Source: Euprymna scolopes (lineage: Eukaryota). From it: a stretch of DNA of 64,000 bases. The notes below the pieces were generated by a model, which was not told where the DNA came from, did no database searches, and worked only from the letters and a program-made list of their open reading frames with translations. Each line of letters opens with the position of its first letter. Position 1 is the stretch's first letter. Positions 1,354-64,000 of the stretch are shown in pieces. The stretch lies in assembly GCA_053919585.1 (NCBI GenBank), contig JBSSHM010000097.1; one strand, 5' to 3'. The translations under genes and the position numbers were made by a program.

Positions 1354-3410
1354 CTAGCCCCCACTTTGACTACTTGGAAAAAGGTCGCTTGTCTCTGGGT
1401 TAACAATTGGTTTTGATTTTAGGACTTCTAAATCATTTTTCAATTGTTCTCTTAAGATGGCACGAATGAAGTCACTAAAGTTTGTGTATGGGATACCATA
1501 ACGTTGAAACTGAAGTTGCTCTGCAGATATGGTTGCATCTCGTAATGCTGAGGGAACAATTTGATCGCCGCTTGATAATCTTCTTGGCTTGGCAATAAAT
1601 TTTCTTCCACGCCAGCGGATATGAATTTTTGATAATCTAACTCGAGATTCACTGATAAAATCAAAAACACCATTGCCAATGACAGTTCCTTTTGAGAGTT
1701 CTTTGTAAAAGAGTTTAGCAGGGGCACCTTGTGGCATTTTAAGCAAGAAGTCTTCACGATAAAAGGCTCGAGTAAAGCTGACTCGTATTTTCATAAGTTG
1801 TTGATCGGGATCATACGCCGGTCGACCATCAATACTCAGTGGAAATAAAATGGTTTCACCTAAAACTTTTTTTGTTGTTCTAATGGCAATATCACGAATT
1901 TGCTTGTTTACTAATGTGCGACTATCACGTTGGTTTTGCCGTAGTATAGCAATTTTTTTGTTTCTTTCATCAACTTTTTTACGGTAATTAACAATTTGTT
2001 TGTTAATGCGTGGACCATAAATACGAGCGGCACGATTAACAAAGACAAGTTGACTTTCGAAAGGATCTTTTCGTAGATTGCTCAATGAGGGTAATTGAGG
2101 TTTAGGGATTAATGGTAGACTGAGTACTCTCTGCCTATCTTTATAAAGCCTTGAAACTCGCTTTCGAATATCATCCCATGGCTTGTAGGTAAATCCACTG
2201 CTTGCCCAAATTTGAATATCTTGATTACCCCCACCAACAACTAAGATCCAATTTCTATTGGATACATATTCCAATGATTTTGAACGCAAGTAAGGAATGG
2301 TAAGGGACTGAAGGCTCGCCCATTAGGGAAAGACCAAATACGGATTCTATCATCTAAAGAGGAACTGATTAGCCAATATCCATCATCGGAGAAGACAGTT
2401 TTTACTACATCATCTGTATGTCCTCGTAAGATTTTGTATAGCGATCCTTTATTTAGATCCCATATTCTAATGGTGTTGTCACGGCTGGCTGTCACCACAT
2501 ATTTTTCATTAGGTGAAAAGTTAACGTTATTGACTACGGCTCGGTGTCCAGGTAGGCTGACTTCTAGTGAGTAAAAACGAGTTTCCCAAATTTGAACGGT
2601 ATAGTTAACATCATTTGAGGAGATGCCCGATGAGGCAAGCCTTAAGCCATCTCCGGAGAACTTGAGAGTGTTAACTCTGAGAATATCATCAATACTATAA
2701 AGTTGTTTCCCTGTTACTGTATCCCAAATAAAGATGTTACCACCAGTATCTGCAGAGGCGATACGAGAACCATCTTCAGATACTGTCATGGCACTGATGC
2801 TTCGTGAGTGTTGTAAGATAGCAATATTAAACCCAGTTTCTTGTTGCCAAATTCTGATAGTATTGTCCTCATGGACCGAGATGATTGTTCCCCCATCTGG
2901 AGTTAGGGCAATTTCCCGACCAACAGAATCAAGTTCCCAGCTGCGAATAAGCGATAAACTATCAAGATCCCAAATATTGATTTGTGCACCGATTGAAGCC
3001 ATAAATGCTCCGTTTCTTGAAACTCCTATGTCATGAATTACCTCATCAGCAATTTGCACATTGATTAAGGGTTGATTGGTATCCCTCCACGCGGATACAT
3101 CTTTGGAATTTTTCCAACGGCTTAGTGATATGCCTGGGATAACAAATGTTCCTAAATTTTTTCTAGCTCTATTTGAAGCACTGCGGATAAAACCGGAGGA
3201 TTCTTGGGCACGAACGGTGATTTCTTTATTGGTTTTATTGGTGTTTTTTGGTTTATTGCTACTGACTTTGTTAGTGCTTTTGTCTTCTTTAGAGATTAGG
3301 GACTTTAAGTCATCAAATTTAGAACTTATATATCCACAACCGCTGATTACCGAACTAAGGATAAGAAGCAATAAAATATTGCGTAATTGTTGAAATAAGT
3401 TTTTTCTCAT
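1354..3410 (-). CDS. WD40-repeat lipoprotein with uncharacterised C-terminal domain, split by one frameshift (~2290-2315)
   Basis: Lipobox ISGC; GH...WD repeats in ORF 2241-3410; the last repeat (ILVVGGGNQDIQIW) continues in ORF 1354-2289. Confidence 0.8.
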
Positions 3411-23832: not shown

Positions 23833-24535
23833 GAATTATTGTCAACTTGACAAGTTATTAAGAAAATTATGTGAAACACATAATTGCCATCCCCTCCCCC
23901 TTATATTACCTGTTTCTAAACGTAAGCCAGCTTCTGATATTCGCCAGTTATATGATAGTGGCGTACGTGATTTTGCTGAAAATTACTTGCAAGAGGCACA
24001 GCAAAAAAATGATGAGCTGAGCGATTTTGCGGATATTCGCTGGCATTATATTGGCAAAATTCAATCAAAAAAATGTAAGCATCTGGCTAAGCAAATGTCG
24101 TGGGTTCATACGATTGATGATGTGAAGCAGGCTATGTTGCTAGACCAGTATTGTTTGCATGAAAATAGGGAAAAATTGTTAAATGTTTGTATTCAAGTGA
24201 ATGTGCATCAAGAAGAACAGAAGAATGGTATTGCACCGAGTGATGTCCCTTCTTTTGCCCAACAACTTGTTGCATTCCCCAATCTATGTTTGCGCGGTTT
24301 AATGTTGATTGGCAAGTTTGGTTTGAGTGTTGAGCAACAAGTTGAAGCATTTACCCAAATGAAAAAATTATTTACTATGTGTAAAAAACGCCTGAATGCG
24401 ATTACAGGGAATGAACATGTTGTGGATTCTTTTGATACGTTATCAATGGGAATGAGCGGTGATTGGCAAACAGCGGTGGAAAATGGCTCAACGATTATTC
24501 GTATTGGCACGACTATTTTTGGAGAAAGAAAATAA
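23816..24535 (+). CDS. yggS: PLP homeostasis protein
   Basis: VSK, FAENYLQEA, WHYIGKIQS, LSMGMSGD, RIGTTIFG. Confidence 0.95.
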   Translation: MMSVIENYCQLDKLLRKLCETHNCHPLPLILPVSKRKPASDIRQLYDSGVRDFAENYLQEAQQKNDELSDFADIRWHYIGKIQSKKCKHLAKQMSWVHTIDDVKQAMLLDQYCLHENREKLLNVCIQVNVHQEEQKNGIAPSDVPSFAQQLVAFPNLCLRGLMLIGKFGLSVEQQVEAFTQMKKLFTMCKKRLNAITGNEHVVDSFDTLSMGMSGDWQTAVENGSTIIRIGTTIFGERK

Positions 24536-24561
24536 TGTTTGAGAAGAGAAAAGGATATTAC

Positions 24562-27396
24562 ATGAAAAAATCAAAGTTTCTGTGTATCACATTAATTGCT
24601 TTGTTACTTACAGCTTGCGGAAATGTTGATCCGGTTACTTTTACAGCTGAATCCTCTACTAATACGACTAGTGTAACAGGGGGTGGTACGGGTACTGGTG
24701 GAGGTGGTACAGGTACTGGTAGTGCATCTTTACAAATTACCTCAGGGGCTACGCATGATGTGTTAGAAGGTAGTGCAATTGGAACAAAGGTGTTTATTGC
24801 ATCAGCTAATAATATTTCAGGACGTGTTTATACGTATTCATTAACCCCTGCGGAATATTTTGCAATAGATACAGTAGGGAATGTATTGGTTGCCAAAGTT
24901 TCAGATTATGAGAAAGCTGTAGAGCATAAAGCAACACTATCAATTAGTAATGGTCAGTCAAGTGTGAGCCAACAACTCACATTTAGGGTGGTGAATGAGA
25001 ATGATACGGTTCCAACTATATCCAGTGCTAGCTCTATTTCAGTGAGTCAAACTGCTCAAGTTGGTGATGTGGTGTTAACGATTTTGGCAGATGGTGGTGA
25101 TGGCAGTAAGGATGGAACTTTGACCTATTTCTTAAGCCAAAGCACGGCTTTCTCATTGAATGGTAATAAGATTGTTGTAGCGAATTCAAATTTTTCCCAA
25201 ACTTCAAATCATAATCTAACTCTCGCCGTGAGCGATGGGAAATATCAAACCTCACAGTTAATCACTATCACAGTTTCAAGTAGTAAATCTATGCAACTTA
25301 AACAACCTTTACTAGATAAAAATTTCACCATTCGTCAAGGTGTTAAGTATGTGGGGCAATGGGTGTTGCCTACGGGCTATAGCACAAATTTTTATCCAAA
25401 AATTACTTCTTCTTTGCCTATGGATGCTTCGTTTCAGGTAACTAACCAAAGTATTCAAGAATTTTCTATGCTTTATAAAGGTGGGTTGAGTTCGTTTAGT
25501 TTAGACTATGTTTTAGTGGATGGTTCAGGACAGCAGAGTAAAGATTCTGCTAAGTTTACTTTTACTGTGGAGCAGTATGATCCCTTGCGTAAGCATCAGT
25601 GGTATTTGCAGAATACGGGGCAAAAAGCTTTTGCATCACTGTCTGGCACAGCTGGTGAAGATATTCGGGTTAGCCCTGTGCATGAGCAGAATATTTTAGG
25701 TTCAGGTGTGAAAGTGGCCATTGTTGATGAAGGATTAGAGATTACTCATGAGGATTTAAAAGATAATGTGGTGGTGGGAAAATCCTATGATTTTATTGAT
25801 AATGATACGAATCCTCAGCCAAGAGGAACAACTGGCGATCATGGAACATCTGTGGCAGGTATTACGGCAATGCGAGGCTGGAATAATAAAGGAGGGGTAG
25901 GGGTTGCCCCGGAATCAAGCATTGTCGGTTATAACTATTTAGCTCCTTCTTTAAAGGAAGGAAAGTTTCTCTTTACTTCCATGGGTTATGCTCATTTAGT
26001 TCAAATTAATACTCCTTCAAGAGAGAATCAAGTGTTTAATTTGAGCTTGGGTGAGGCACCGCAGACTATATATTCCGTGTATGGGGCGAGGGATGGATCA
26101 AGTTTATGGGTGGATACGGCACGTTGTGGGACAACGGGTAATTCCTTTCGCTTTGGTTCAACAGAGGGCTTTATTAATAAATCCAACTGTGTCCCTCTCA
26201 ATGCAGGTAAGGGAGCGGTGTATGTGAAATCAGCTGGGAATTATTACAGTGATAGTGCTTGTAAAAATCAGCCTAGTGAGTTAAGTTGTGATGTGGTAAA
26301 TGGGGCAGAAATTAGCGAAGGAAATCCTCATATGCTAGTGATTTCCTCTCTGAATGCAAGAGGAAAGCGAGCCTCCTATGCTTCGGTTGGTCCAGCTGTG
26401 TGGGTAAGTGCTCCAGGTGGTGAAGCAGGATATTCTAACAGTGTTTATGATACGATTAATAGCCGTTTTGGTTTGAATTATGTTTGGTCATCAGATGTAG
26501 TGAAAAGACCCTCTATGGTTACTACGGATGAGTCTGGTTGTAATAAAGGTTATTCAACGGAACGTCATAAACTTACTCATAATGGTACTAGTTATTTCCT
26601 CCCTTATACGCCTTTTCATGGCACATTAGTTTTTGCAAGTAATGGTAGTACTTCTATTGTTCCCAATGCAGAAAATAGTAACTGTAATTATGTTTCAGAT
26701 TTTATCGGTTCCTCCGCGGCAGCACCGGTTGTTTCTGGTGTGGCAGCGTTGTTATTATCTGTCAATAAAGATCTCACGTGGCGAGATGTACGCTATATTC
26801 TCGCAAAAACTGCTAGACAAACGGATAAGCAGGTGAGTGCTTACAGTAAACAAGTTTCAGATGGTTCACAATTATTGCGTGCGACGTGGCAAACCAATCA
26901 AGCAAATTTCCCCTTTCATCATTGGTACGGATTTGGTGTAGTGAATGCAGAGGCTGCGGTAACGATGGCAAAAAGCTATACTCATTTTCTTACCAATGAT
27001 AAATTGATACAAGGTGAATGGATTGATGGAACGTTTCCAAGTAATAATGCCATTGCGGATAATAGCGTTAAAGGAGTGGAGGGAACGGTGAATGTTCCAG
27101 CACAAAATATGCAGTGGATTGAAGGGGTGCAAATTCGCTTATCTGTTACCCATCCATATATTTCAGACATATCTGCTAAATTGATTTCCCCTAGTGGTAC
27201 AGAAAGTATTGTTGTGCGTGCCTTTAATTCATTTGGGGATAACGATAATTATAAGGATACGTTATTCTACACTAATAAATTTTATCGAGAAACGGCGATT
27301 GATGGGCAGTGGAAATTAGTGATTACTGATAGTCGTTCAGGTAATGTCGGTACGGCAACTGATTGGAAAATACGATTTTATGGTGAGAAGAAATAA
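24562..27396 (+). CDS. Lipoprotein S8 kexin/ASP-like serine protease with cadherin-like repeats and P-domain
   Basis: AAGGA before ATG 24562; lipobox LTAC; DYE and VVNEND cadherin-type motifs; VDEG, DHGT, SAGN, GSSAAAP; LTWRDV; C-terminal P-domain (LISPSGT...GQWKL). Confidence 0.9.
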   Translation: MKKSKFLCITLIALLLTACGNVDPVTFTAESSTNTTSVTGGGTGTGGGGTGTGSASLQITSGATHDVLEGSAIGTKVFIASANNISGRVYTYSLTPAEYFAIDTVGNVLVAKVSDYEKAVEHKATLSISNGQSSVSQQLTFRVVNENDTVPTISSASSISVSQTAQVGDVVLTILADGGDGSKDGTLTYFLSQSTAFSLNGNKIVVANSNFSQTSNHNLTLAVSDGKYQTSQLITITVSSSKSMQLKQPLLDKNFTIRQGVKYVGQWVLPTGYSTNFYPKITSSLPMDASFQVTNQSIQEFSMLYKGGLSSFSLDYVLVDGSGQQSKDSAKFTFTVEQYDPLRKHQWYLQNTGQKAFASLSGTAGEDIRVSPVHEQNILGSGVKVAIVDEGLEITHEDLKDNVVVGKSYDFIDNDTNPQPRGTTGDHGTSVAGITAMRGWNNKGGVGVAPESSIVGYNYLAPSLKEGKFLFTSMGYAHLVQINTPSRENQVFNLSLGEAPQTIYSVYGARDGSSLWVDTARCGTTGNSFRFGSTEGFINKSNCVPLNAGKGAVYVKSAGNYYSDSACKNQPSELSCDVVNGAEISEGNPHMLVISSLNARGKRASYASVGPAVWVSAPGGEAGYSNSVYDTINSRFGLNYVWSSDVVKRPSMVTTDESGCNKGYSTERHKLTHNGTSYFLPYTPFHGTLVFASNGSTSIVPNAENSNCNYVSDFIGSSAAAPVVSGVAALLLSVNKDLTWRDVRYILAKTARQTDKQVSAYSKQVSDGSQLLRATWQTNQANFPFHHWYGFGVVNAEAAVTMAKSYTHFLTNDKLIQGEWIDGTFPSNNAIADNSVKGVEGTVNVPAQNMQWIEGVQIRLSVTHPYISDISAKLISPSGTESIVVRAFNSFGDNDNYKDTLFYTNKFYRETAIDGQWKLVITDSRSGNVGTATDWKIRFYGEKK

Positions 27397-50724: not shown

Positions 50725-51912
50725 TTATGCTTCTTTTTGTGCCTTCTCATATAGGCGCTTGTGAGCATCTAAGCCGGCGAAACGGAAATATCCATCAGTA
50801 AAATAGGGGGTGTGAAAAGATGTTCCATCTTGTGGTAAAGCAAAGTGATAAAAATCAAGATATTCTTGATAATTTAGACGTTTTCTATTGGCTAGTAAAC
50901 GTGTGTGTTGTTCTTTAAGTAGGTGTTTGTTGTATCCTTTTAATATTATCCCTGAGAAAAATTCAGCAACAAAACCCGAGCCATAGCTGAATAATCCCAC
51001 ACGTTGCCCCTCAAGGTTGTCTTCATTAAAGTCCAATAGTGAGCATAAATTGAGATAGAGAGAAGCAGTATAACTATTGCCAATCGTTTCGTTATAAAGT
51101 AACCCTGGTGCAATCTTACTTAAGCGGGATTGAAATTCTTCTTTACATCGAAATAATTGTTTAAGGGCTTTCTCTGCCATGCGTGTGAAAGGTAAATGAA
51201 AGCAGAGTTGGTGAATGTGTTCAGGAAGTCTTTTGCTTAACTCACTGTACTTTTTCCAGCATTCGTTTAATGCGTGCAGATAAACTCGAGTGGAGTATTG
51301 TCCATCGACAATAGCAGATTGTCTGTAATTAGGACGCCAAAAATCCATGACATCCTCACTGATGTAAGCACTTTCTGTTTCAATTTGCATGAGTCTTGGT
51401 TGCTCAGAGACTAATAATGCAACAGCTCCACAACCTTGTGTTGCCTCACCTGCTGAATGTAAATCATAGCGTGCAACATCGGAAGTAATCACCAGTACTT
51501 GCGAATCTTTTTCCAAGCTTACCAATCCCATTGCTGCACGCAATGAAAAGGTGCCGCTATAACAGGCTTGTTTGGTCTCAATAATTCGGCAATCTTTAGG
51601 CAAATCAAGGAGTTTATGCACAAATACCCCTGCAGATTTTGATTGATCAATGCCACTTTCTGTGGCAAAAATAAGTGCTTTAATACGATTTCTTTCTGTT
51701 TTTTCTAAAATTTGCAAGGCAGCATTTGCTCCCATGGTTACTACATCCTCATCAGGTGGTAACATGCTCATTTCTTTTTGCCCAATTCCTGTGGAGTATT
51801 TTTCCGCAGGAACACCCCGTTGCTTAGCTAAATCATCTAAGCTGAAAAAAAAGGGTGGGGTGTAAAAACTAATTAAATCAATTCCAATAGCCATAGCATT
51901 AAATTTTAACAT
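50725..51912 (-). CDS. mvaS: Hydroxymethylglutaryl-CoA synthase (bacterial MvaS type)
   Basis: ATESGIDQSKS, KQACYSGT, GEATQGCGA, DFWRP, FHLPF, GNSYTASLY, SYGSG. Confidence 0.95.
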   Translation of the reverse strand: MLKFNAMAIGIDLISFYTPPFFFSLDDLAKQRGVPAEKYSTGIGQKEMSMLPPDEDVVTMGANAALQILEKTERNRIKALIFATESGIDQSKSAGVFVHKLLDLPKDCRIIETKQACYSGTFSLRAAMGLVSLEKDSQVLVITSDVARYDLHSAGEATQGCGAVALLVSEQPRLMQIETESAYISEDVMDFWRPNYRQSAIVDGQYSTRVYLHALNECWKKYSELSKRLPEHIHQLCFHLPFTRMAEKALKQLFRCKEEFQSRLSKIAPGLLYNETIGNSYTASLYLNLCSLLDFNEDNLEGQRVGLFSYGSGFVAEFFSGIILKGYNKHLLKEQHTRLLANRKRLNYQEYLDFYHFALPQDGTSFHTPYFTDGYFRFAGLDAHKRLYEKAQKEA

Positions 51913-56302: not shown

Positions 56303-56367
56303 ATAATTTACTTAAGTAGTATGGGAAATCCTTTTTATAAAACCTATTTTGTTGCTGTTTGTCATCA

Positions 56368-56586
56368 ATGCCGAAAGAAAAAGCTGATACAGAAAAAATG
56401 CATCGAGTATCCATATCGCTCAATGATAGGACGTACAAGATGCTTTGCTACATGAGTGAAAATGGCTACATGAATGCGAATAAGCCAACTACTCTAGCTG
56501 CAGATGTGGTGAAAAATTTTGTGTGGGAGAACTTTAGCAAGGCAAGCCAAACATTTAAGGATATTGATGAAGATCTAGATGGCTGA
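56368..56586 (+). CDS. Small ribbon-helix-helix-like protein in the mraZ position
   Basis: RVSISLN strand plus two helices; overlaps the rsmH start; no MraZ DxxGR repeats. Confidence 0.6.
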   Translation: MPKEKADTEKMHRVSISLNDRTYKMLCYMSENGYMNANKPTTLAADVVKNFVWENFSKASQTFKDIDEDLDG

Positions 56587-57514
56587 AAAAGATGAAAATC
56601 AGGAGCATCATCCTGTTTTATTGCAATCTTCCATTGGCTATTTAATTACGGATAAAGACGGCGTTTATATTGATGGGACATATGGCAGAGGTGGTCATAG
56701 TCAGGAAATATTAAAGAGGATTTCTCAGCAGGCTAAACTGTTTGTTTTTGATCAAGATATTGAGGCAATAGCTGAGGCACAGAAGTTGGGGAAGAAAGAT
56801 GTGCGAGTGAGCATTTTTCATCAAAATTTCCGTCATATGCATAGAGAAATAAACCGATGTGGCGTGTTAGGAAAAGTGAGCGGTTTGTTTTTGGATATTG
56901 GAGTATCTTCTCCACAATTAGATAACCCAGAACGGGGCTTTAGTTTTCAGCATAGCGGACCGCTTGATATGCGCATGAATAATCAGCAAGGAATGAGTGC
57001 CTTGCAGTGGTTAAAAGAGGCAAAGGTTGAGCAAATTCGCCAGGCTTTTAAGGATTTTGCTGATGTGCGAGGAGCTGGGAAATGGGCACGATTGATTAAG
57101 GAAAAAGCGTTAGCTAATGAAATTTTAGGGACACAAGATTTGGCGAGTTTGGTTGAGAAGCATACGCCAAAAAAAGTGCAGATGCAAATGAATATTCATC
57201 CGGCAACGCGAATTTTTCAAGCTATTCGTATTGCGGTTAATGATGAGATTGCTTCGCTCAAGGAAGTTTTACAAAGTGCTAAGGAGGTGCTTGGTAAAGG
57301 AGGGCGTTTGGTGGTGATTAGTTTTCATTCTGTGGAACATCGTTTATTACGAAGTTTTGCAAGGGAGAAGCAATCACAATTGCCAGTAAATTTTCCAGTT
57401 ATTGAACAGGAAGATTGGAGGATTATTCGGATGTTGGAGCATCCGAGTGATGCTGAAGTAGAAAAAAACAGGAGAGCAAGAAGTGCACGTTTAACTGTTT
57501 TAGAAAAAGTGTAA
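56579..57514 (+). CDS. rsmH: 16S rRNA m4C1402 methyltransferase
   Basis: HHPVLL, DGTYGRGGHS, GVSSPQLD, PLDMRM, ISFHS. Confidence 0.98.
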   Translation: MAEKDENQEHHPVLLQSSIGYLITDKDGVYIDGTYGRGGHSQEILKRISQQAKLFVFDQDIEAIAEAQKLGKKDVRVSIFHQNFRHMHREINRCGVLGKVSGLFLDIGVSSPQLDNPERGFSFQHSGPLDMRMNNQQGMSALQWLKEAKVEQIRQAFKDFADVRGAGKWARLIKEKALANEILGTQDLASLVEKHTPKKVQMQMNIHPATRIFQAIRIAVNDEIASLKEVLQSAKEVLGKGGRLVVISFHSVEHRLLRSFAREKQSQLPVNFPVIEQEDWRIIRMLEHPSDAEVEKNRRARSARLTVLEKV

Positions 57515-57614
57515 ATCTTTTAACAGAGACTTACAGGATAGGCTTTTTCTGTTATGAAAGTATGCTCTGAGTGTGGGAGTATAAAAATTAACAAAATAAT
57601 TCAAGGAGATAGAC

Positions 57615-59117
57615 ATGGAATATACATTGTTAGAAAATGGTATGCCATTTGAAATTGTTGAGTCACCAGAGGTGATGACTGCAAGTAGTGGGATGAATTC
57701 ATCAGATAGTGAAAGTTTCTCATCAGAGGATGAGGTGGAGTTTCTAGAGGAAGATTCGTTTATGCAGAATAGTGTTCAATCAGTTAATCAATCAGTTGAG
57801 TCACCAATAAAACAATCGGGACACTTTAATTGTACGGTTGTGGGGATTGGTAATTATGGTTGTCAAAATATCGATTATATTAGTGAAAAAACAAATCGAT
57901 GTTCTTTTATTAAAATTAATGCAGATTTTACCCATCAGGATGATTGCTTTGAGTATATTACTCTTAGTGAGGATAAGCTAGGCAGTAGTGTGGATGAAAA
58001 GCTGAAAGAAGAATTGCAATCTCGGTTGCAGAAGGGGTTTGAACAGGCAGATATTGTGATTGTCGTAGCTTCTTTAACAGATGAGTTTGGCGAAATAACG
58101 CCTATTATTTGTGAGCAGTTAAATCGTATTGAAAAATCAAATGTAGTGGTGTTGTTTAAGCCAACGGATCATTTTCAGAGTGATGTCGATAAGGCAAATA
58201 TTATTTTAGATAAGGTTAAGGAAGCACAGCAAGGTGAAGAAGCAATAAAAAATTCCTTGGTTATTCTTTCAGAAAAAAAAGCTAGTGCACGCTATCAAAT
58301 TGTTACGGATAGGTGGGAAGGATTGTTTGCCACAGTTTATGATATTACCGAATGTTTAGATACATTTCTTAATCCTAAAAATAGTGCACAGATTAGTTTA
58401 TCTCGTGTGCGTAAGATGCTTAATTGTGGTGGTCCTACTTTTTATGGTCGTATTACCACTAAGATTGATGAAAATGATCAGGATGGAACATTGCTAGATA
58501 GCTTGCCAGAAAGCCTTAGAGAGCAATCTTTTGTTGATGATGCGGATTTGTTGCGCGCTCGTAATCTTGTGGCAATTGTGAAAAGTTCTGGTGAGTTTAG
58601 TACGATCATAGAAGGACAGTTAAAATCTCAGTTAGGTAAAATTGCCAATGCAAATTATAGCCAATCGTATCAGCAGCAGGTGGTACATCTTAGTCATCTT
58701 TATGATGAGAATATTTCTGAGGGAGAGATGGAGATTATTTTTCTTGCCACAGGCATCACTGGTGAGACAAATGCGATGGAAAGTGGTGTAGATTCTGAAC
58801 AAGAAGTATTGACAGGTGATGTTGAGCTTGAAACACTAACACAGGAAGCTAGTGAGCATAGGGAAGAGGCAGGCATGACACCGAAAATGGTTGCTCAACC
58901 ACCTTCTTCAGTTGCTCAGAAAAAAATGGAGGGACTTGCTCCCAAATCTTCTAAAATTATGCCCCTATCTTTAGGTAATTCAGTTGCTCAGAAAAAAATG
59001 GAGGGACTTGCTCCCAAATCTTCTAAAATTATGCCCCTATCTTTAGGTAAGCCACCTAGTGCAAATGAGGAAAATAGAGAAGATATTCCGCCTATCTTGA
59101 AAAATCAGTATAATTGA
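57615..59117 (+). CDS. Highly divergent FtsZ homologue with degenerate GTPase motifs
   Basis: Colinear FtsZ-like blocks VVGIGNYG, FIKINAD, ADIVIVVA, LFKP, NSLVIL, DLLRARNLV, IIFLATGI and tail EDIPPILKNQ; good RBS GGAGA. Confidence 0.8.
   Translation: MEYTLLENGMPFEIVESPEVMTASSGMNSSDSESFSSEDEVEFLEEDSFMQNSVQSVNQSVESPIKQSGHFNCTVVGIGNYGCQNIDYISEKTNRCSFIKINADFTHQDDCFEYITLSEDKLGSSVDEKLKEELQSRLQKGFEQADIVIVVASLTDEFGEITPIICEQLNRIEKSNVVVLFKPTDHFQSDVDKANIILDKVKEAQQGEEAIKNSLVILSEKKASARYQIVTDRWEGLFATVYDITECLDTFLNPKNSAQISLSRVRKMLNCGGPTFYGRITTKIDENDQDGTLLDSLPESLREQSFVDDADLLRARNLVAIVKSSGEFSTIIEGQLKSQLGKIANANYSQSYQQQVVHLSHLYDENISEGEMEIIFLATGITGETNAMESGVDSEQEVLTGDVELETLTQEASEHREEAGMTPKMVAQPPSSVAQKKMEGLAPKSSKIMPLSLGNSVAQKKMEGLAPKSSKIMPLSLGKPPSANEENREDIPPILKNQYN
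58907..59050 (+). repeat. Perfect 72-bp tandem duplication in the FtsZ-like linker
   Basis: 58907-58978 equals 58979-59050 (SVAQKKMEGLAPKSSKIMPLSLG x2). Confidence 0.95.
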
Positions 59118-59148: not shown

Positions 59149-59454
59149 TTGGCATCAGGAACACATACCCGTTGGCTCATATGGTTTGGAGCATTAGGCT
59201 TATTTGTGTTGAATTGCTTTTGGATTATTGATCAAGCATATAGCTATCGCAAAAGTGTAGCGGAATTGTATCAATTGCAGAAAGTACTGCATAGAACAAA
59301 AAGTATTCATACGCAAAGGCATATTTATTCTCAGTATCAACAATCTTTATACAATATTGAGCAATCAGCACGACAGCAGGGGCTATCTAAACCTAGTAAG
59401 GTAAGAAGCTATATCATTAAGTCACAGGAATATTCTCAACATTCAACACGGTGA
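59149..59454 (+). CDS. ftsL: Cell division protein FtsL (divergent)
   Basis: Single TM, coiled coil, IEQSARQQGLSKP; directly before ftsI. Confidence 0.7.
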   Translation: MASGTHTRWLIWFGALGLFVLNCFWIIDQAYSYRKSVAELYQLQKVLHRTKSIHTQRHIYSQYQQSLYNIEQSARQQGLSKPSKVRSYIIKSQEYSQHSTR

Positions 59455-59484: not shown

Positions 59485-61428
59485 ATGTTCTCTATCATAA
59501 AATTTATCCAAGCAAAGTGGCGCTTTTCTTTGGTTTTATTTGCTGGTTTGATGGGGCTATTATCTCTTGGTATCAAAGGGTATTTGAATACACAAAGTTC
59601 AATTCTTAAAGCTAAATCAAAAAATGTTATTCATCGTGTTGTTACGCATAATGCTCCCAGAGGCTCTATCTTAGATCATCAGGGACGTGTACTGGCAGTG
59701 GATGTGTCATTTTATGAGTATGATTTTGATATGGACTTATTGCATCAAAAATGGTTGGCTACTTATACTCGCAATATGTCAGAAGAGGAACTAAAAAGTA
59801 ATCCTTTTGATTTCACTCATTATTTAGATAAAGCAGAAATACAATTAGCAATTACTAAGATTGCCAAAATTTTTTCTATTTCAGAAAAAGAATTTAATAA
59901 AGTTTTACAGGCTAATGGAGGTAGCAAAAAGCAATGGGTGATACAAAAAAAAATCACTTTACAAGAACATGAAAATTTTCAAAGGCTTAAGAGGAATTTC
60001 TTGCAACAGCAAAAAGCGATAGTTAAAAAATATAAAAAGGGTTATCATACAGAGTTCAAAAAAATTAGTTAGTCAAGAAAAAAGTGATGAGATATTAAAT
60101 GAATATAGGAACAATGGTCGTGTAGCCTTTTTTAAATTGGAAACGACTCAACAAGTAGTGAGGAGTTTTTTTGATGCGATTTCTTTTTATGAGTACTATC
60201 AGCGGACGTATCCTTATCAAAATGTTTTATCGCAATTGCTTGGACATATGCGTATTGATAAAAATAGAGAGGCATTTGATGGTGTAGAAAAACGATTGGA
60301 TAAACAATTGCGAGGAAGTAGTGGTAGGATTGAATACCTTAAGAATATGTATGGTAAACGTGTGGAGATCGTGGATAATGCAAATACACATCCTACTAAG
60401 TCGGGCAAAGATGTTAGGTTGACAATTGATTATCGTTTGCAATATATCCTTAATAGAGAGCTTTATAAACAGTTACATAGGCATAGGGCAGAGAGTGCAT
60501 CGGCATTGTTGGTTGAGGTGGAAAGTGGTGCAATTAGAGCCGTTGCTTCACAGCCAAATTACAATCCAAATAATAATTATGAGCGTACAAGCTACCGAAC
60601 ACGTTTGCGTTCGTTATTAGATTATGTAGAACCTGGGTCAGTACAAAAACCTCTGTTAATTGCTGCAGGATTGGAGAGTGGGGAATTGATGGAGGATTCA
60701 AACGGTAAGCGTTAGCCGTTCAAATTATTTTACATGGCGGAATTCCCCTCTAGTTGAAAGACGCTACACAAAACCAACAACAATTGGTATTGAAGAAGTC
60801 ATTAAATATTCTATTAATAGCGGCATAGTGAAATTTGCTGAGAAAGTTAATAAAGAATCTTTGTGGATGCTTTATGATAAGTTAGGCTATGGGGCAGAAT
60901 ACGATATTTTTGAAGGCAGGAGAGGGATTTCCAATCTTGCCCATTCAGATAGCTGGAATGACAGTGATTATTTTACTCGTACTTATGGCTACTCTGAAAA
61001 ATTAACTATTTTTAATATTCTTGCTTTTTATCTTGCTGTTGCCAATAAAGGGATTTTGCCACCTATACATCTTTTACCTAAGAAGCAAGATGAGATTCGT
61101 AGACATTCAGTTCGTGTGTTAAACACGCATACTGCTGATATCATGACAGAAATTTTGTCTCAAGTTACTAAAGGTTATGGTACTGGGCGATTAGCGAGGG
61201 TGAAGGGGATTGATGTGTCAGGAAAAACAGGAACAAGTCGTAAGGGGGGGGTATCAATATTAAAATATCGAGCAACATTTATTGGTTTTGCACCACGGAA
61301 TAATCCAAAATATGTATTGGGCAGTCATGGTGGATGAACCAAGTCAAAATGAGGAGCTTTATTCTGGTGGCTCGGTTGCAGCCCCTTTGTTTGCTAGTAT
61401 TATGGAACAGGCTTTGAAGGAAATGTAA
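59485..61428 (+). CDS. ftsI: PBP3 transpeptidase, three apparent frameshifts (~60060, ~60700, ~61320)
   Basis: RGSILD, EPGSVQK (SxxK), SIN (SxN), GKTGT; each break is repaired by removing one base from an A or G run. Confidence 0.9.
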
Positions 61429-61435
61429 GTTGAAT

Positions 61436-62976
61436 ATGTTGAATTTATTGGCGTTTTTAGATGAGTATGATTTTAATTATGAGGTGGTTTTCTTCGTGTG
61501 TAGATAAAGTTGAATCGCTGACTTTTGATTCGTTTTGTTTGGATGGTCGTTTAGTCAAGAAAGATGCCGTTTTTTTAGGTATAGAGAAGAATCTCCCTTT
61601 TATTAACCAAGCAGTGAGGAATGGTTGCGTTGCCGTAATCGTTGATAAAAAAGATAGGATATGTACAGGTGATTGTACGGTTTCTGTGTTGGCGATTGAA
61701 AATTTGCAAGAGAAGTGGGCACATTTACTAAAATGTTTTTTTCAATTGACTTCTTTTGCACCAAAGCTCATTGGCATTACGGGTACAAATGGAAAAACCT
61801 CAAGTGCACATTTTGTGGCTCAATTGTTAAGCCAAGCTAATTATCAGGTAGGGATTTTAGGAACATTAGGCAATGGGGTGTTTGATCCTAAAAATCCAGT
61901 GTTATCATCATCTTCTTTAACAACGCTTGATACAATCAGCCTTTATCAGCAGTTATCTCACTTCAAGCAAAGAAATATGGATTATGTTGTGATGGAGGTG
62001 TCTTCACATGGTATTGATCAAAATCGTATTATGGGTTTGGTATTTGATGTGGTATGCTTTACAAACTTGAGTCGGGAACATTTGGATTATCACAATAATA
62101 TGGAGGAGTATTTTTTGTGTAAAGCACGTTTATTTAAAGATTATGTAGATAAGAATACTCATCATGTCATTAATGTGGGCAGATGGGTATGGTAGACGAT
62201 TGTATGATGAGATAAAGAAAGATATCCACGTACATGGAGAAAATCTGCTATCCTATTACTATTGTTATGAAGGATACTCGCCATCAATGTACGCCGATTT
62301 AACTTTATTAAGAGAGGGCGATCAACCATTAATGCTACAGTATCAGGGAAATTCATATCCCATTGCACCATCTTTGCTTGTTAATGATATTGAGTATCAA
62401 AATATGCTTTGTGGATTGGCAATTTTATTAGCTCTAGGTCAGCCAGTTAGAAAAATTGTTGAGTATGGTAGTAATTTGCACTCTGTGATTGGTAGGATGC
62501 AATATGTATCTTCCCTAGAGGATGATATTACGGTTATTGTTGATTATGCTCATACAGCTGATGCATTGAGTCATGTCTTGAATGCAATTTATAGGAGCAA
62601 GAAAGCTAATGAAAATTTGATTTGTGTGTTTGGTTGTGGTGGTAATCGTGATCAAGGTAAGAGAAGAGAAATGGCAGAAGTTGCGTCAAATTTGTGTAAT
62701 TATCTTTATATCACAGATGATAATCCAAGAAATGAAAATCCTGAGTGTATTCGTCAACAGATTATTGCAGGAATTAGTACACATAAAACTACCTATAAAG
62801 AAATTGCTGATAGAGGGATGGCAATTGAACAAGCGGTTATCAATGCTAAGTCAGGAGATGTTGTACTGATCGCAGGTAAAGGGCATGAAAAATATCAACT
62901 TGTGCAAGGTAATAAACTCCCTTTTGATGATGTTGAGCAAGTAAAAAATGCTTTGAAAAAAAGGCTATTAAGGTGA
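61436..62976 (+). CDS. murE: UDP-MurNAc-tripeptide ligase, frameshift ~62177 (possibly also ~61490)
   Basis: GITGTNGKTS, MEVSSHG, EHLDYH, DYAHT, DNPR, AGKGHE. Confidence 0.93.
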
Positions 62977-62982
62977 TTGAAA

Positions 62983-64000
62983 ATGGGAGATAAGTCTATT
63001 TTTTCTTTGCCTTTGCAACGTGCAGTTGGAATTTTATTGAGTGATTCTCATCAATTGACTCATCATGTTAGTGGGGATTTTATTGGCGTAAAAATAGATA
63101 GTCGCTTGATTCAAGCAGGTGATGTTTTTATTGCGATAAAAGGTAAGCAGGTTGATGGACATGATTTTATTAATGAGGCAATTAGTCAAGGTGCAGTAGC
63201 AATCGTTGTGAGTGAGGATTTTGATGGGTGCAAAGGAGAGCATAAAGTACCATTGATTAACGTACCTTGCCCGCAACATGCTTTTGGGAAATTAGCCAAT
63301 TTATGGCGAACGGAACTTTTTAAAGGTAAGGTAATCGCTTTAACAGGAAGTAATGGTAAGACCACAATTAAAAATATGTTAAAAAGTGTGTTGCAAATCC
63401 GTTACAAAACTGGCTCAACAGAGGGAAATTACAACAATGAATTAGGCTTACCAATCACTATTTTTGATTTGCCTTTGAATTGTGATTATTGGATATTGGA
63501 AATGGGAGCAAGGCATATTGGAGATATTGATTACCTTTGTCGCATTGCTTTGCCCGATATTACTTTTGTTAGCAATATCGGTCATGCACACATCGGTGAG
63601 TTTGGTGGTCGTAAAAAGCAATTGCAGGCTAAGTCAGAAATTTTTTCATACGGTGAGGTTTCATTACTGGATAGAGACTCACCGCATGATGAACTATTTT
63701 CTTTAGGTTGTCAGCATAAAAAATTAGACAATATTATAACCATAGCAAGAAAAGGTATCCGTAATAATGAAGAAGATATAAATGTTAAGTGGGATTTTGT
63801 AGAAGGAGAGAGTATCTTTTACACCGCTTATGGACACTTCAGATTACAATTAAATTGTTTAGGTGAGCATAATACACATAATGCTGCTTGGGTGGTGGCA
63901 TTAGCTGATTATTGTGGGCTTAATAAGGAAGAAATTATTGCAGGATTAAGCCGTGTTCAGCCTCAGGATGGTCGCTTGCAGATGATTCCATGCAAAGATT
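62983..64000 (+). CDS. murF: UDP-MurNAc-pentapeptide ligase, 5' part (runs off the window end)
   Basis: Manual translation: IDSR, DGHDF, LTGSNGKTT, NYNNELGLP, EMG, AHIGEFG; frame open to the end. Confidence 0.95.
   Translation, partial: MGDKSIFSLPLQRAVGILLSDSHQLTHHVSGDFIGVKIDSRLIQAGDVFIAIKGKQVDGHDFINEAISQGAVAIVVSEDFDGCKGEHKVPLINVPCPQHAFGKLANLWRTELFKGKVIALTGSNGKTTIKNMLKSVLQIRYKTGSTEGNYNNELGLPITIFDLPLNCDYWILEMGARHIGDIDYLCRIALPDITFVSNIGHAHIGEFGGRKKQLQAKSEIFSYGEVSLLDRDSPHDELFSLGCQHKKLDNIITIARKGIRNNEEDINVKWDFVEGESIFYTAYGHFRLQLNCLGEHNTHNAAWVVALADYCGLNKEEIIAGLSRVQPQDGRLQMIPCKD

Follow-up and report, generated by a model that had tools for sequence, protein, structure and literature searches.

A divergent FtsZ descendant without canonical GTP-binding motifs, probably the only FtsZ-type protein of a squid-associated bacterium

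Introduction

Canonical bacterial FtsZs (TIGR00065; Pfam PF00091 and PF12327) are composed of a Rossmann-like N-terminal domain, helix H7 and a C-terminal domain, followed by a disordered linker and a terminal peptide of the D-I-P-x-x-L-[KR] type, which binds FtsA. Their nucleotide-contact loops include T4, which bears the tubulin signature GGGTG[ST]G, and the T7 "synergy" loop (N-x-D-x-x-D) that completes the GTPase site of the next subunit. In E. coli, rsmH and ftsL are adjacent, and ftsZ is the last gene of the dcw cluster, after ftsQ and ftsA. GTP-driven treadmilling of FtsZ is regarded as the organising principle of division in nearly all bacteria. Two departures from this scheme are relevant here. 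SUP05 bacteria, including the free-living Ca. Thioglobus autotrophicus, and clam symbionts are published as lacking FtsZ (Shah et al. 2019, PMC6509183). In plants, ARC3 is an FtsZ-derived protein lacking GTPase activity that carries an added MORN domain and regulates chloroplast FtsZ by acting on the co-existing active FtsZ1 and FtsZ2.

The DNA analysed here, termed "the window", is a 64,000-nucleotide stretch of contig JBSSHM010000097.1 from the Euprymna scolopes assembly GCA_053919585.1, and represents a contig of a bacterium associated with the squid. An earlier note, made from the sequence alone, proposed that the ORF at 57615-59117 is a catalytically dead FtsZ paralogue inserted between rsmH and ftsL, and that it could cap, bundle or tether the filaments of a canonical FtsZ, or titrate FtsA. 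The observation itself is confirmed by the analysis below, whereas its interpretation is supported only in part.

Genomic context

The gene (57615-59117, plus strand, as all features below) is an intact 500-aa ORF, overlapped in other frames by no ORF of 60 aa or more. A strong Shine-Dalgarno sequence, AAGGAG (57603-57608), is located 6 nt before the ATG, and no terminator-like site separates rsmH, this gene and ftsL. Upstream, rsmH (56579-57514), encoding the 16S rRNA m4C1402 methyltransferase, matches Pfam Methyltransf_5 over its full length (E 1e-90). It is preceded by a 75-aa ORF (56359-56586) without Pfam hit, in the place where mraZ normally lies; an ORF of 71-96 aa precedes rsmH in every related locus. 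Downstream, a 101-aa ftsL-like gene with a TTG start (59149-59454) is 47-50% identical to the ORFs found in the same position in two related loci (L003 and L004) and can be aligned with E. coli FtsL, while its orthologue in a further related locus (L006) hits Pfam FtsL.

The next genes appear to be damaged. Using tblastn with the intact FtsI of related loci L001 and L004, ftsI (59485-61420) is found in four pieces in frames 1, 2, 3 and 1, with breaks near 60040-60140, 60700 and 61321 that are not at homopolymers, and Pfam shows split PBP_dimer and Transpeptidase domains; it is apparently a pseudogene. Likewise, murE (61461-62976) is apparently frameshifted near 62177, as residues 17-244 of the intact MurE of L001 match in frame 3 and residues 245-502 in frame 1. 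In contrast, murF (63079-64000) is intact as far as the window's end, with 59% identity over 305 aa in one frame. In relatives, ftsI and murE are intact. The rest of the window is ordinary gammaproteobacterial housekeeping, including Entner-Doudoroff genes, glutamine synthetase, ArgRS, cytochrome bc1, a T2SS part and HMG-CoA synthase, plus a WD40 protein, all of them intact.

The order small ORF, rsmH, this gene, ftsL, ftsI is observed in all seven lineages, i.e., here and in six related ones, and in those with enough sequence the cluster ends after mraY. The gene position thus differs from that of E. coli ftsZ, but is conserved in relatives.

Descent from FtsZ and predicted fold

Direct HMM scans are silent: the window protein has no hit at E up to 1 in Pfam or NCBIfam, including PF00091, PF12327 and TIGR00065, and its homologues P0001-3 have none in NCBIfam. 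Taken alone, this would have wrongly refuted the finding. A search of about 15 billion proteins returned only three close homologues, P0001-3, at 47-57% identity, which form with the window protein what is termed here the window's clade; the name "ferritin" given to P0003 by JGI is supported by nothing. A scan of GTDB found a single species, and a scan of JGI metagenomes found no members. Beyond the clade itself, RsmH identity drops to 48% or less, so RsmH did not identify nearer relatives.

A profile of the four sequences, scored against 1.84 billion representatives, finds only seven proteins. Three are the clade's own members, one (P0004) is a repetitive, low-complexity false positive, and three (P0005-7; E 5e-10 to 3e-5) carry Pfam Tubulin (E 1e-21 to 1e-26) and match TIGR00065 ftsZ end to end at 144-178 bits, still below the 295-bit cut-off of that model. 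These three proteins define a sister clade of divergent FtsZs located in the same rsmH-ftsL slot. Profile-profile comparison (hhalign) links the window's clade to the sister clade with a probability of 98.6% (E 5e-16 over 297 columns), and the sister clade to E. coli FtsZ with a probability of 99.7% (E 3e-26). The sister clade is needed for this link, since hhalign of the window's clade against the single E. coli sequence is weak (E 0.044), and a sequence profile search of the PDB gives only marginal FtsZ hits (E 0.05). A word-indexed search with the seven-sequence alignment added no member of the family; its only new hit, P0008, is an ordinary, if divergent, FtsZ lying after ftsA in another organism.

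Structure predictions agree with these results. An AlphaFold model built from the four clade members alone is weak overall (pLDDT 48, core 55-80), but its top-50 Foldseek matches in the PDB are already all FtsZs (E 1e-13). A second, core-only AF2 model with eight sequences reaches a pLDDT of 77.5 and a pTM of 0.82, and matches FtsZ structures with TM values of 0.76-0.82 (E 6e-18), again with only FtsZs among the top 50; it should be noted that its alignment contained true FtsZs, which favours an FtsZ fold, whereas that of the first model did not. Searches of AFDB clusters also return FtsZ. Independently of any alignment, 81 of the 100 best clusters of an ESM Atlas feature search carry Tubulin and FtsZ_C. 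The protein is not closest to other families of the tubulin superfamily (TubZ, CetZ, BtubA/B, FtsZ-like FtsZl), as all top PDB and AFDB hits are FtsZs and TubZ-type clusters appear only from rank 90 of the feature search. The predicted fold and the descent are considered settled.

Nucleotide-contact loops of the core

A nine-sequence alignment including E. coli FtsZ is colinear from strand S1 to S10 and on to the C-terminus. Every block of the by-eye alignment of the earlier note is reproduced by MAFFT against E. coli FtsZ (from NC_000913), among them KINAD against AVNTD and LFKP against VTKP. The two-domain core (57819-58760, residues 69-382) retains a single recognisable nucleotide-contact loop, the T1-like glycine loop GIGNYGCQNI (57843-57872), which aligns to E. 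coli residues 17-26 (GVGGGGGNAV). Nine of its ten positions are invariant in the window's clade (GIGN[YN]GCQNI), the position of Gly21 being Tyr or Asn; the sister clade exhibits G[IVL]GNGGCR, with the same G-x-G-N-x-G-C form.

The other loops are replaced. T3, GLGAGANPE in E. coli and GNGAGM[EK]PE in the sister clade, is variable and four residues shorter in the window's clade. T4 (58071-58103), GMGGGTGTGAAP in E. coli and SLGGGTG[ST]GA[LV]P in the sister clade, reads SLTDEFGE-ITP in the window protein, T-D-E-F-G-E replacing the tubulin signature with a one-residue deletion; the same change is seen in all four clade members (SL[TI]DExx[ED]-[IV]TP), in which D156 and E157 are invariant. T6, IPND in E. 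coli and IPN[DQ] in the sister clade, becomes [LI]S[EQ]E, with loss of the Asn. T7 (58380-58421), NVDFAD in E. coli and KID[FY]xD in the sister clade, is QISLSR in the window protein and Q[IV][SR]LS[RK] in its clade: both Asp residues are lost, and the position of catalytic Asp212 is Arg or Lys in all four members. As these replacements are shared by the four members, the loss happened once, in their common ancestor.

The replacing residues are themselves conserved. The former pocket loops are more conserved than the rest of the core, with 43 of 88 positions invariant against 73 of 226 (p = 0.009). Core identity within the clade is 47-67%, with dN of 0.23-0.43 and saturated dS, which is indistinguishable from the neighbouring RsmH (58-66%; dN 0.27-0.35). 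The gene is not decaying.

Terminal regions

The N-terminal region (57615-57818, residues 1-68) is predicted as disordered (pLDDT below 30) and, as the earlier note had claimed, is acidic and Ser-rich, with 15 Asp/Glu, 15 Ser and a single Lys/Arg. It starts with a short motif, L-x-N-G-x-P-F-E (residues 6-13), of which L6, N8, G9, P11, F12 and E13 are invariant in the window's clade. The motif is conserved in both clades, as P-F-E in the window's clade and A-F-E in the sister clade, which displays FAFE[FY], also followed by a spacer.

The core is followed by a C-terminal linker (58761-59069, residues 383-485) predicted as disordered (pLDDT below 40), fast-evolving (18-35% identity within the clade), and harbouring a perfect 72-bp (24-codon) tandem duplication (58907-59050; TRF, 2.0 copies, 100% match). 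The protein ends with a peptide of FtsZ type, E-D-I-P-P-I-L-K-N-Q-Y-N (59070-59117, including the stop codon). Its DIPPILKNQ segment aligns with E. coli DIPAFLRKQ and with D-I-P-A-I-L-K of the sister clade, whose peptide also ends in Asn; L495, Q498 and N500 are invariant in the window's clade. Binding of this peptide to FtsA is inferred from sequence alone.

FtsZ content of the closest sequenced relative

P0003 belongs to the MAG LS06H_Bin4, an octocoral symbiont assigned to GTDB order PS1, on a deep branch of "Ca. Thioglobaceae" and near SUP05, which the order contains. This MAG is 1.97 Mb long, with 37.5% GC, and 96.5% complete (PMC9502895, Table S1). The COG table of the same study (Table S3, column order confirmed by its header) gives identical counts for the four MAGs of this species, LS06H_Bin4, LS07H_Bin3, LS08H_Bin2 and EG16H_Bin2 (96.5, 92.1, 91.9 and 91.7% complete): FtsZ (COG0206) 0, FtsA (COG0849) 1, FtsQ (COG1589) 1, and ZipA (COG3115) 0. 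This evidence is second-hand, and concerns a relative whose protein is 47% identical to that of the window. No second FtsZ homologue lies in the window or in the related loci retrieved for either clade. The gene is most probably the only FtsZ-family gene of its genome, although for the window's own bacterium this remains an inference, and a canonical ftsZ located elsewhere cannot be excluded.

Discussion

The gene encodes a true descendant of FtsZ, which most likely acts as a GTP-independent scaffold or organiser of the divisome, tethered to the membrane through FtsA; this explanation is favoured with moderate confidence. The analysis itself establishes the homology and the predicted fold, the loss of the motifs, purifying selection, the conserved gene position, and the absence of annotated FtsZ in the MAGs of the relative. 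The lack of GTP binding, and with it of GTPase activity and GTP-dependent polymerisation, is on the other hand inferred from sequence alone, and FtsA binding through the C-terminal peptide, a role in division, and the absence of a second ftsZ in this particular genome are likewise inferences. The conserved T1-like loop and pocket could mean that some ligand is still bound, and, since ftsI and murE look broken in this genome, the division machinery may be decaying and the present role of the gene may differ from that in relatives. In the inferred history, ftsZ came to lie between rsmH and ftsL in an ancestor shared with the sister clade, at the head of a dcw cluster that now ends after mraY. 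The sister clade still has all GTP-contact loops, whereas in the window's clade loops T3, T4, T6 and T7 and the base-contacting part of helix H7 would have been replaced, the replacements being conserved since.

The earlier note was right that the protein has an FtsZ fold, lacks by sequence the motifs for GTP binding and hydrolysis, keeps an FtsZ-type C-terminal peptide, and occupies an unusual slot. Its proposal of an extra, dead paralogue working beside a canonical FtsZ is not supported, but is weakened rather than excluded, and is considered unlikely. In its favour, the window covers only 64 kb and does not contain the usual ftsQ-ftsA-ftsZ end of the cluster, the C-terminal peptide would let the protein compete for FtsA, and ARC3 provides a precedent for dead paralogues regulating an active one, although here no active FtsZ partner is evident. 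However, the four near-complete MAGs of the closest sequenced relative have no COG0206 FtsZ, the affiliated SUP05 clade is published as FtsZ-less, and the GTPase-competent sister clade occupies the same slot, which fits one relocated gene degenerating better than an added copy. The note had foreseen that, were this the only ftsZ, the paralogue model would be wrong but the case even more unusual.

A more doubtful alternative is that FtsZ-based division has been abandoned, as in SUP05, and that the protein is a relic on its way to being lost, or is kept for another task, such as anchoring or regulating FtsA or another partner through its two terminal peptides. The frameshifted ftsI and murE, the affiliation with FtsZ-less bacteria, the very recent duplication in the linker, and the conserved N-terminal motif, which has no known partner, agree with this view. 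Against it, the core is as constrained as RsmH across four species, the gene keeps its place and apparent co-transcription inside the division operon, and ftsI and murE are intact in relatives. Finally, a polymerising FtsZ that still binds nucleotide through non-canonical residues is very unlikely, despite the nearly invariant T1-like loop and the former pocket being the best-conserved part of the protein, given the changes observed in T1, T3, T4, T6 and T7, single changes at several of these positions abolishing GTP binding or hydrolysis in E. coli FtsZ.

A more speculative mechanism may be considered. The former T4 loop is now acidic (D156, E157, E160), while the former T7 loop carries Arg or Lys in place of Asp212. 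The acidic residues could take the place of the GTP phosphates and pair with the basic residues of the next subunit, forming a charge-swapped contact that stands in for the GTP/Mg bridge and would allow static, nucleotide-free filaments, rings or oligomers anchored by FtsA. In this view, the lineage divides with a nucleotide-free FtsZ, and the clade would be the missing intermediate between ordinary FtsZ and the "FtsZ-less" SUP05 bacteria, in the order relocated, then GTPase-dead, then lost or unrecognisable. This reading is possible but tentative, and rather unlikely on present evidence.

Literature searches found no description of such a protein. It is a variant of FtsZ rather than a new kind of system: the fold, the linker and the type of C-terminal peptide are shared with canonical FtsZ, whereas the replacement of the T3, T4, T6 and T7 motifs and the N-terminal extension with its own conserved motif distinguish it from canonical FtsZ. 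The MAGs of the closest sequenced relative are, as SUP05, scored as lacking FtsZ by standard annotation, yet an FtsZ-derived gene is present but invisible to HMM annotation; "FtsZ-less" calls in related genomes therefore deserve a re-check by profile or structure. The finding also bears on how SUP05/Thioglobaceae, published as the only free-living FtsZ-less proteobacteria, divide, and how they lost FtsZ. This lineage may divide with a "dead-enzyme" version of the protein that drives division in nearly all bacteria. Kept under purifying selection, still wired into the division operon, and still carrying an FtsA-binding-type tail, a natural FtsZ without the GTP-binding motifs would be a natural experiment on which FtsZ functions need the nucleotide cycle.

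Further features of the FtsZ-derived protein

The N-terminus of the FtsZ-derived protein harbors a conserved short motif (residues 6-15, window 57630-57659), which reads L-x-N-G-x-P-F-E-[IV]-[IV], and FAFE[FY] in the sister clade. A 50-90-aa acidic spacer separates this motif from the core. In the disordered linker of the same gene, a perfect in-frame tandem duplication of 72 bp is observed (window 58907-59050), which is evidently very recent. Of note, two different species of the clade inferred from sequence to be GTPase-dead occur in a single sequencing run (SRR26146373), from which the loci L003 and L004 both originate. Their proteins are 46% identical overall by tblastn (61% in the core), and each of them is accompanied by its own rsmH and ftsL.

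Organization of the dcw cluster

A small ORF of 71-96 aa, without any Pfam hit, lies where mraZ is normally found (window 56359-56586). It is present in every related locus of both clades: L001 (242-457), L003 (5809-6027), L004 (97-315), L006 (2404-2643), and L007 (8760-9050). In relatives, the dcw cluster stops after mraY and is followed by unrelated genes, XdhC plus an ABC transporter or ruvA/ruvC (L001 8168-10886, L006 10261-12080, and L007 16947-18633). Furthermore, a lone Mur ligase lies next to gidA in L007 (1062-2423). The cluster is fragmented in this lineage.

In the window, the two genes that follow ftsL in the cluster, ftsI and murE, appear to be disrupted (59485-62976). The ftsI gene carries at least three frameshifts, near 60040-60140, 60700, and 61321, and murE carries one, near 62177. 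None of these is located at a homopolymer, the thirty other genes checked in the window are intact, and so are the orthologues in relatives. The septal peptidoglycan genes may be decaying in this squid-associated bacterium.

Mevalonate-pathway and eukaryote-like genes

Mevalonate-pathway genes are present, which is unusual for Gammaproteobacteria. The window possesses HMG-CoA synthase (50725-51912), and in the sister clade HMG-CoA reductase and an FMN-dependent dehydrogenase (FMN_dh) gene lie beside the dcw head (L005 6827-8065, L006 1086-2153, and L007 7458-8531). In addition, the window encodes a WD40 beta-propeller protein (2241-3410) and a 977-aa subtilase with a proprotein-convertase P-domain (24463-27396). 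Such eukaryote-like features fit a host-associated life style.
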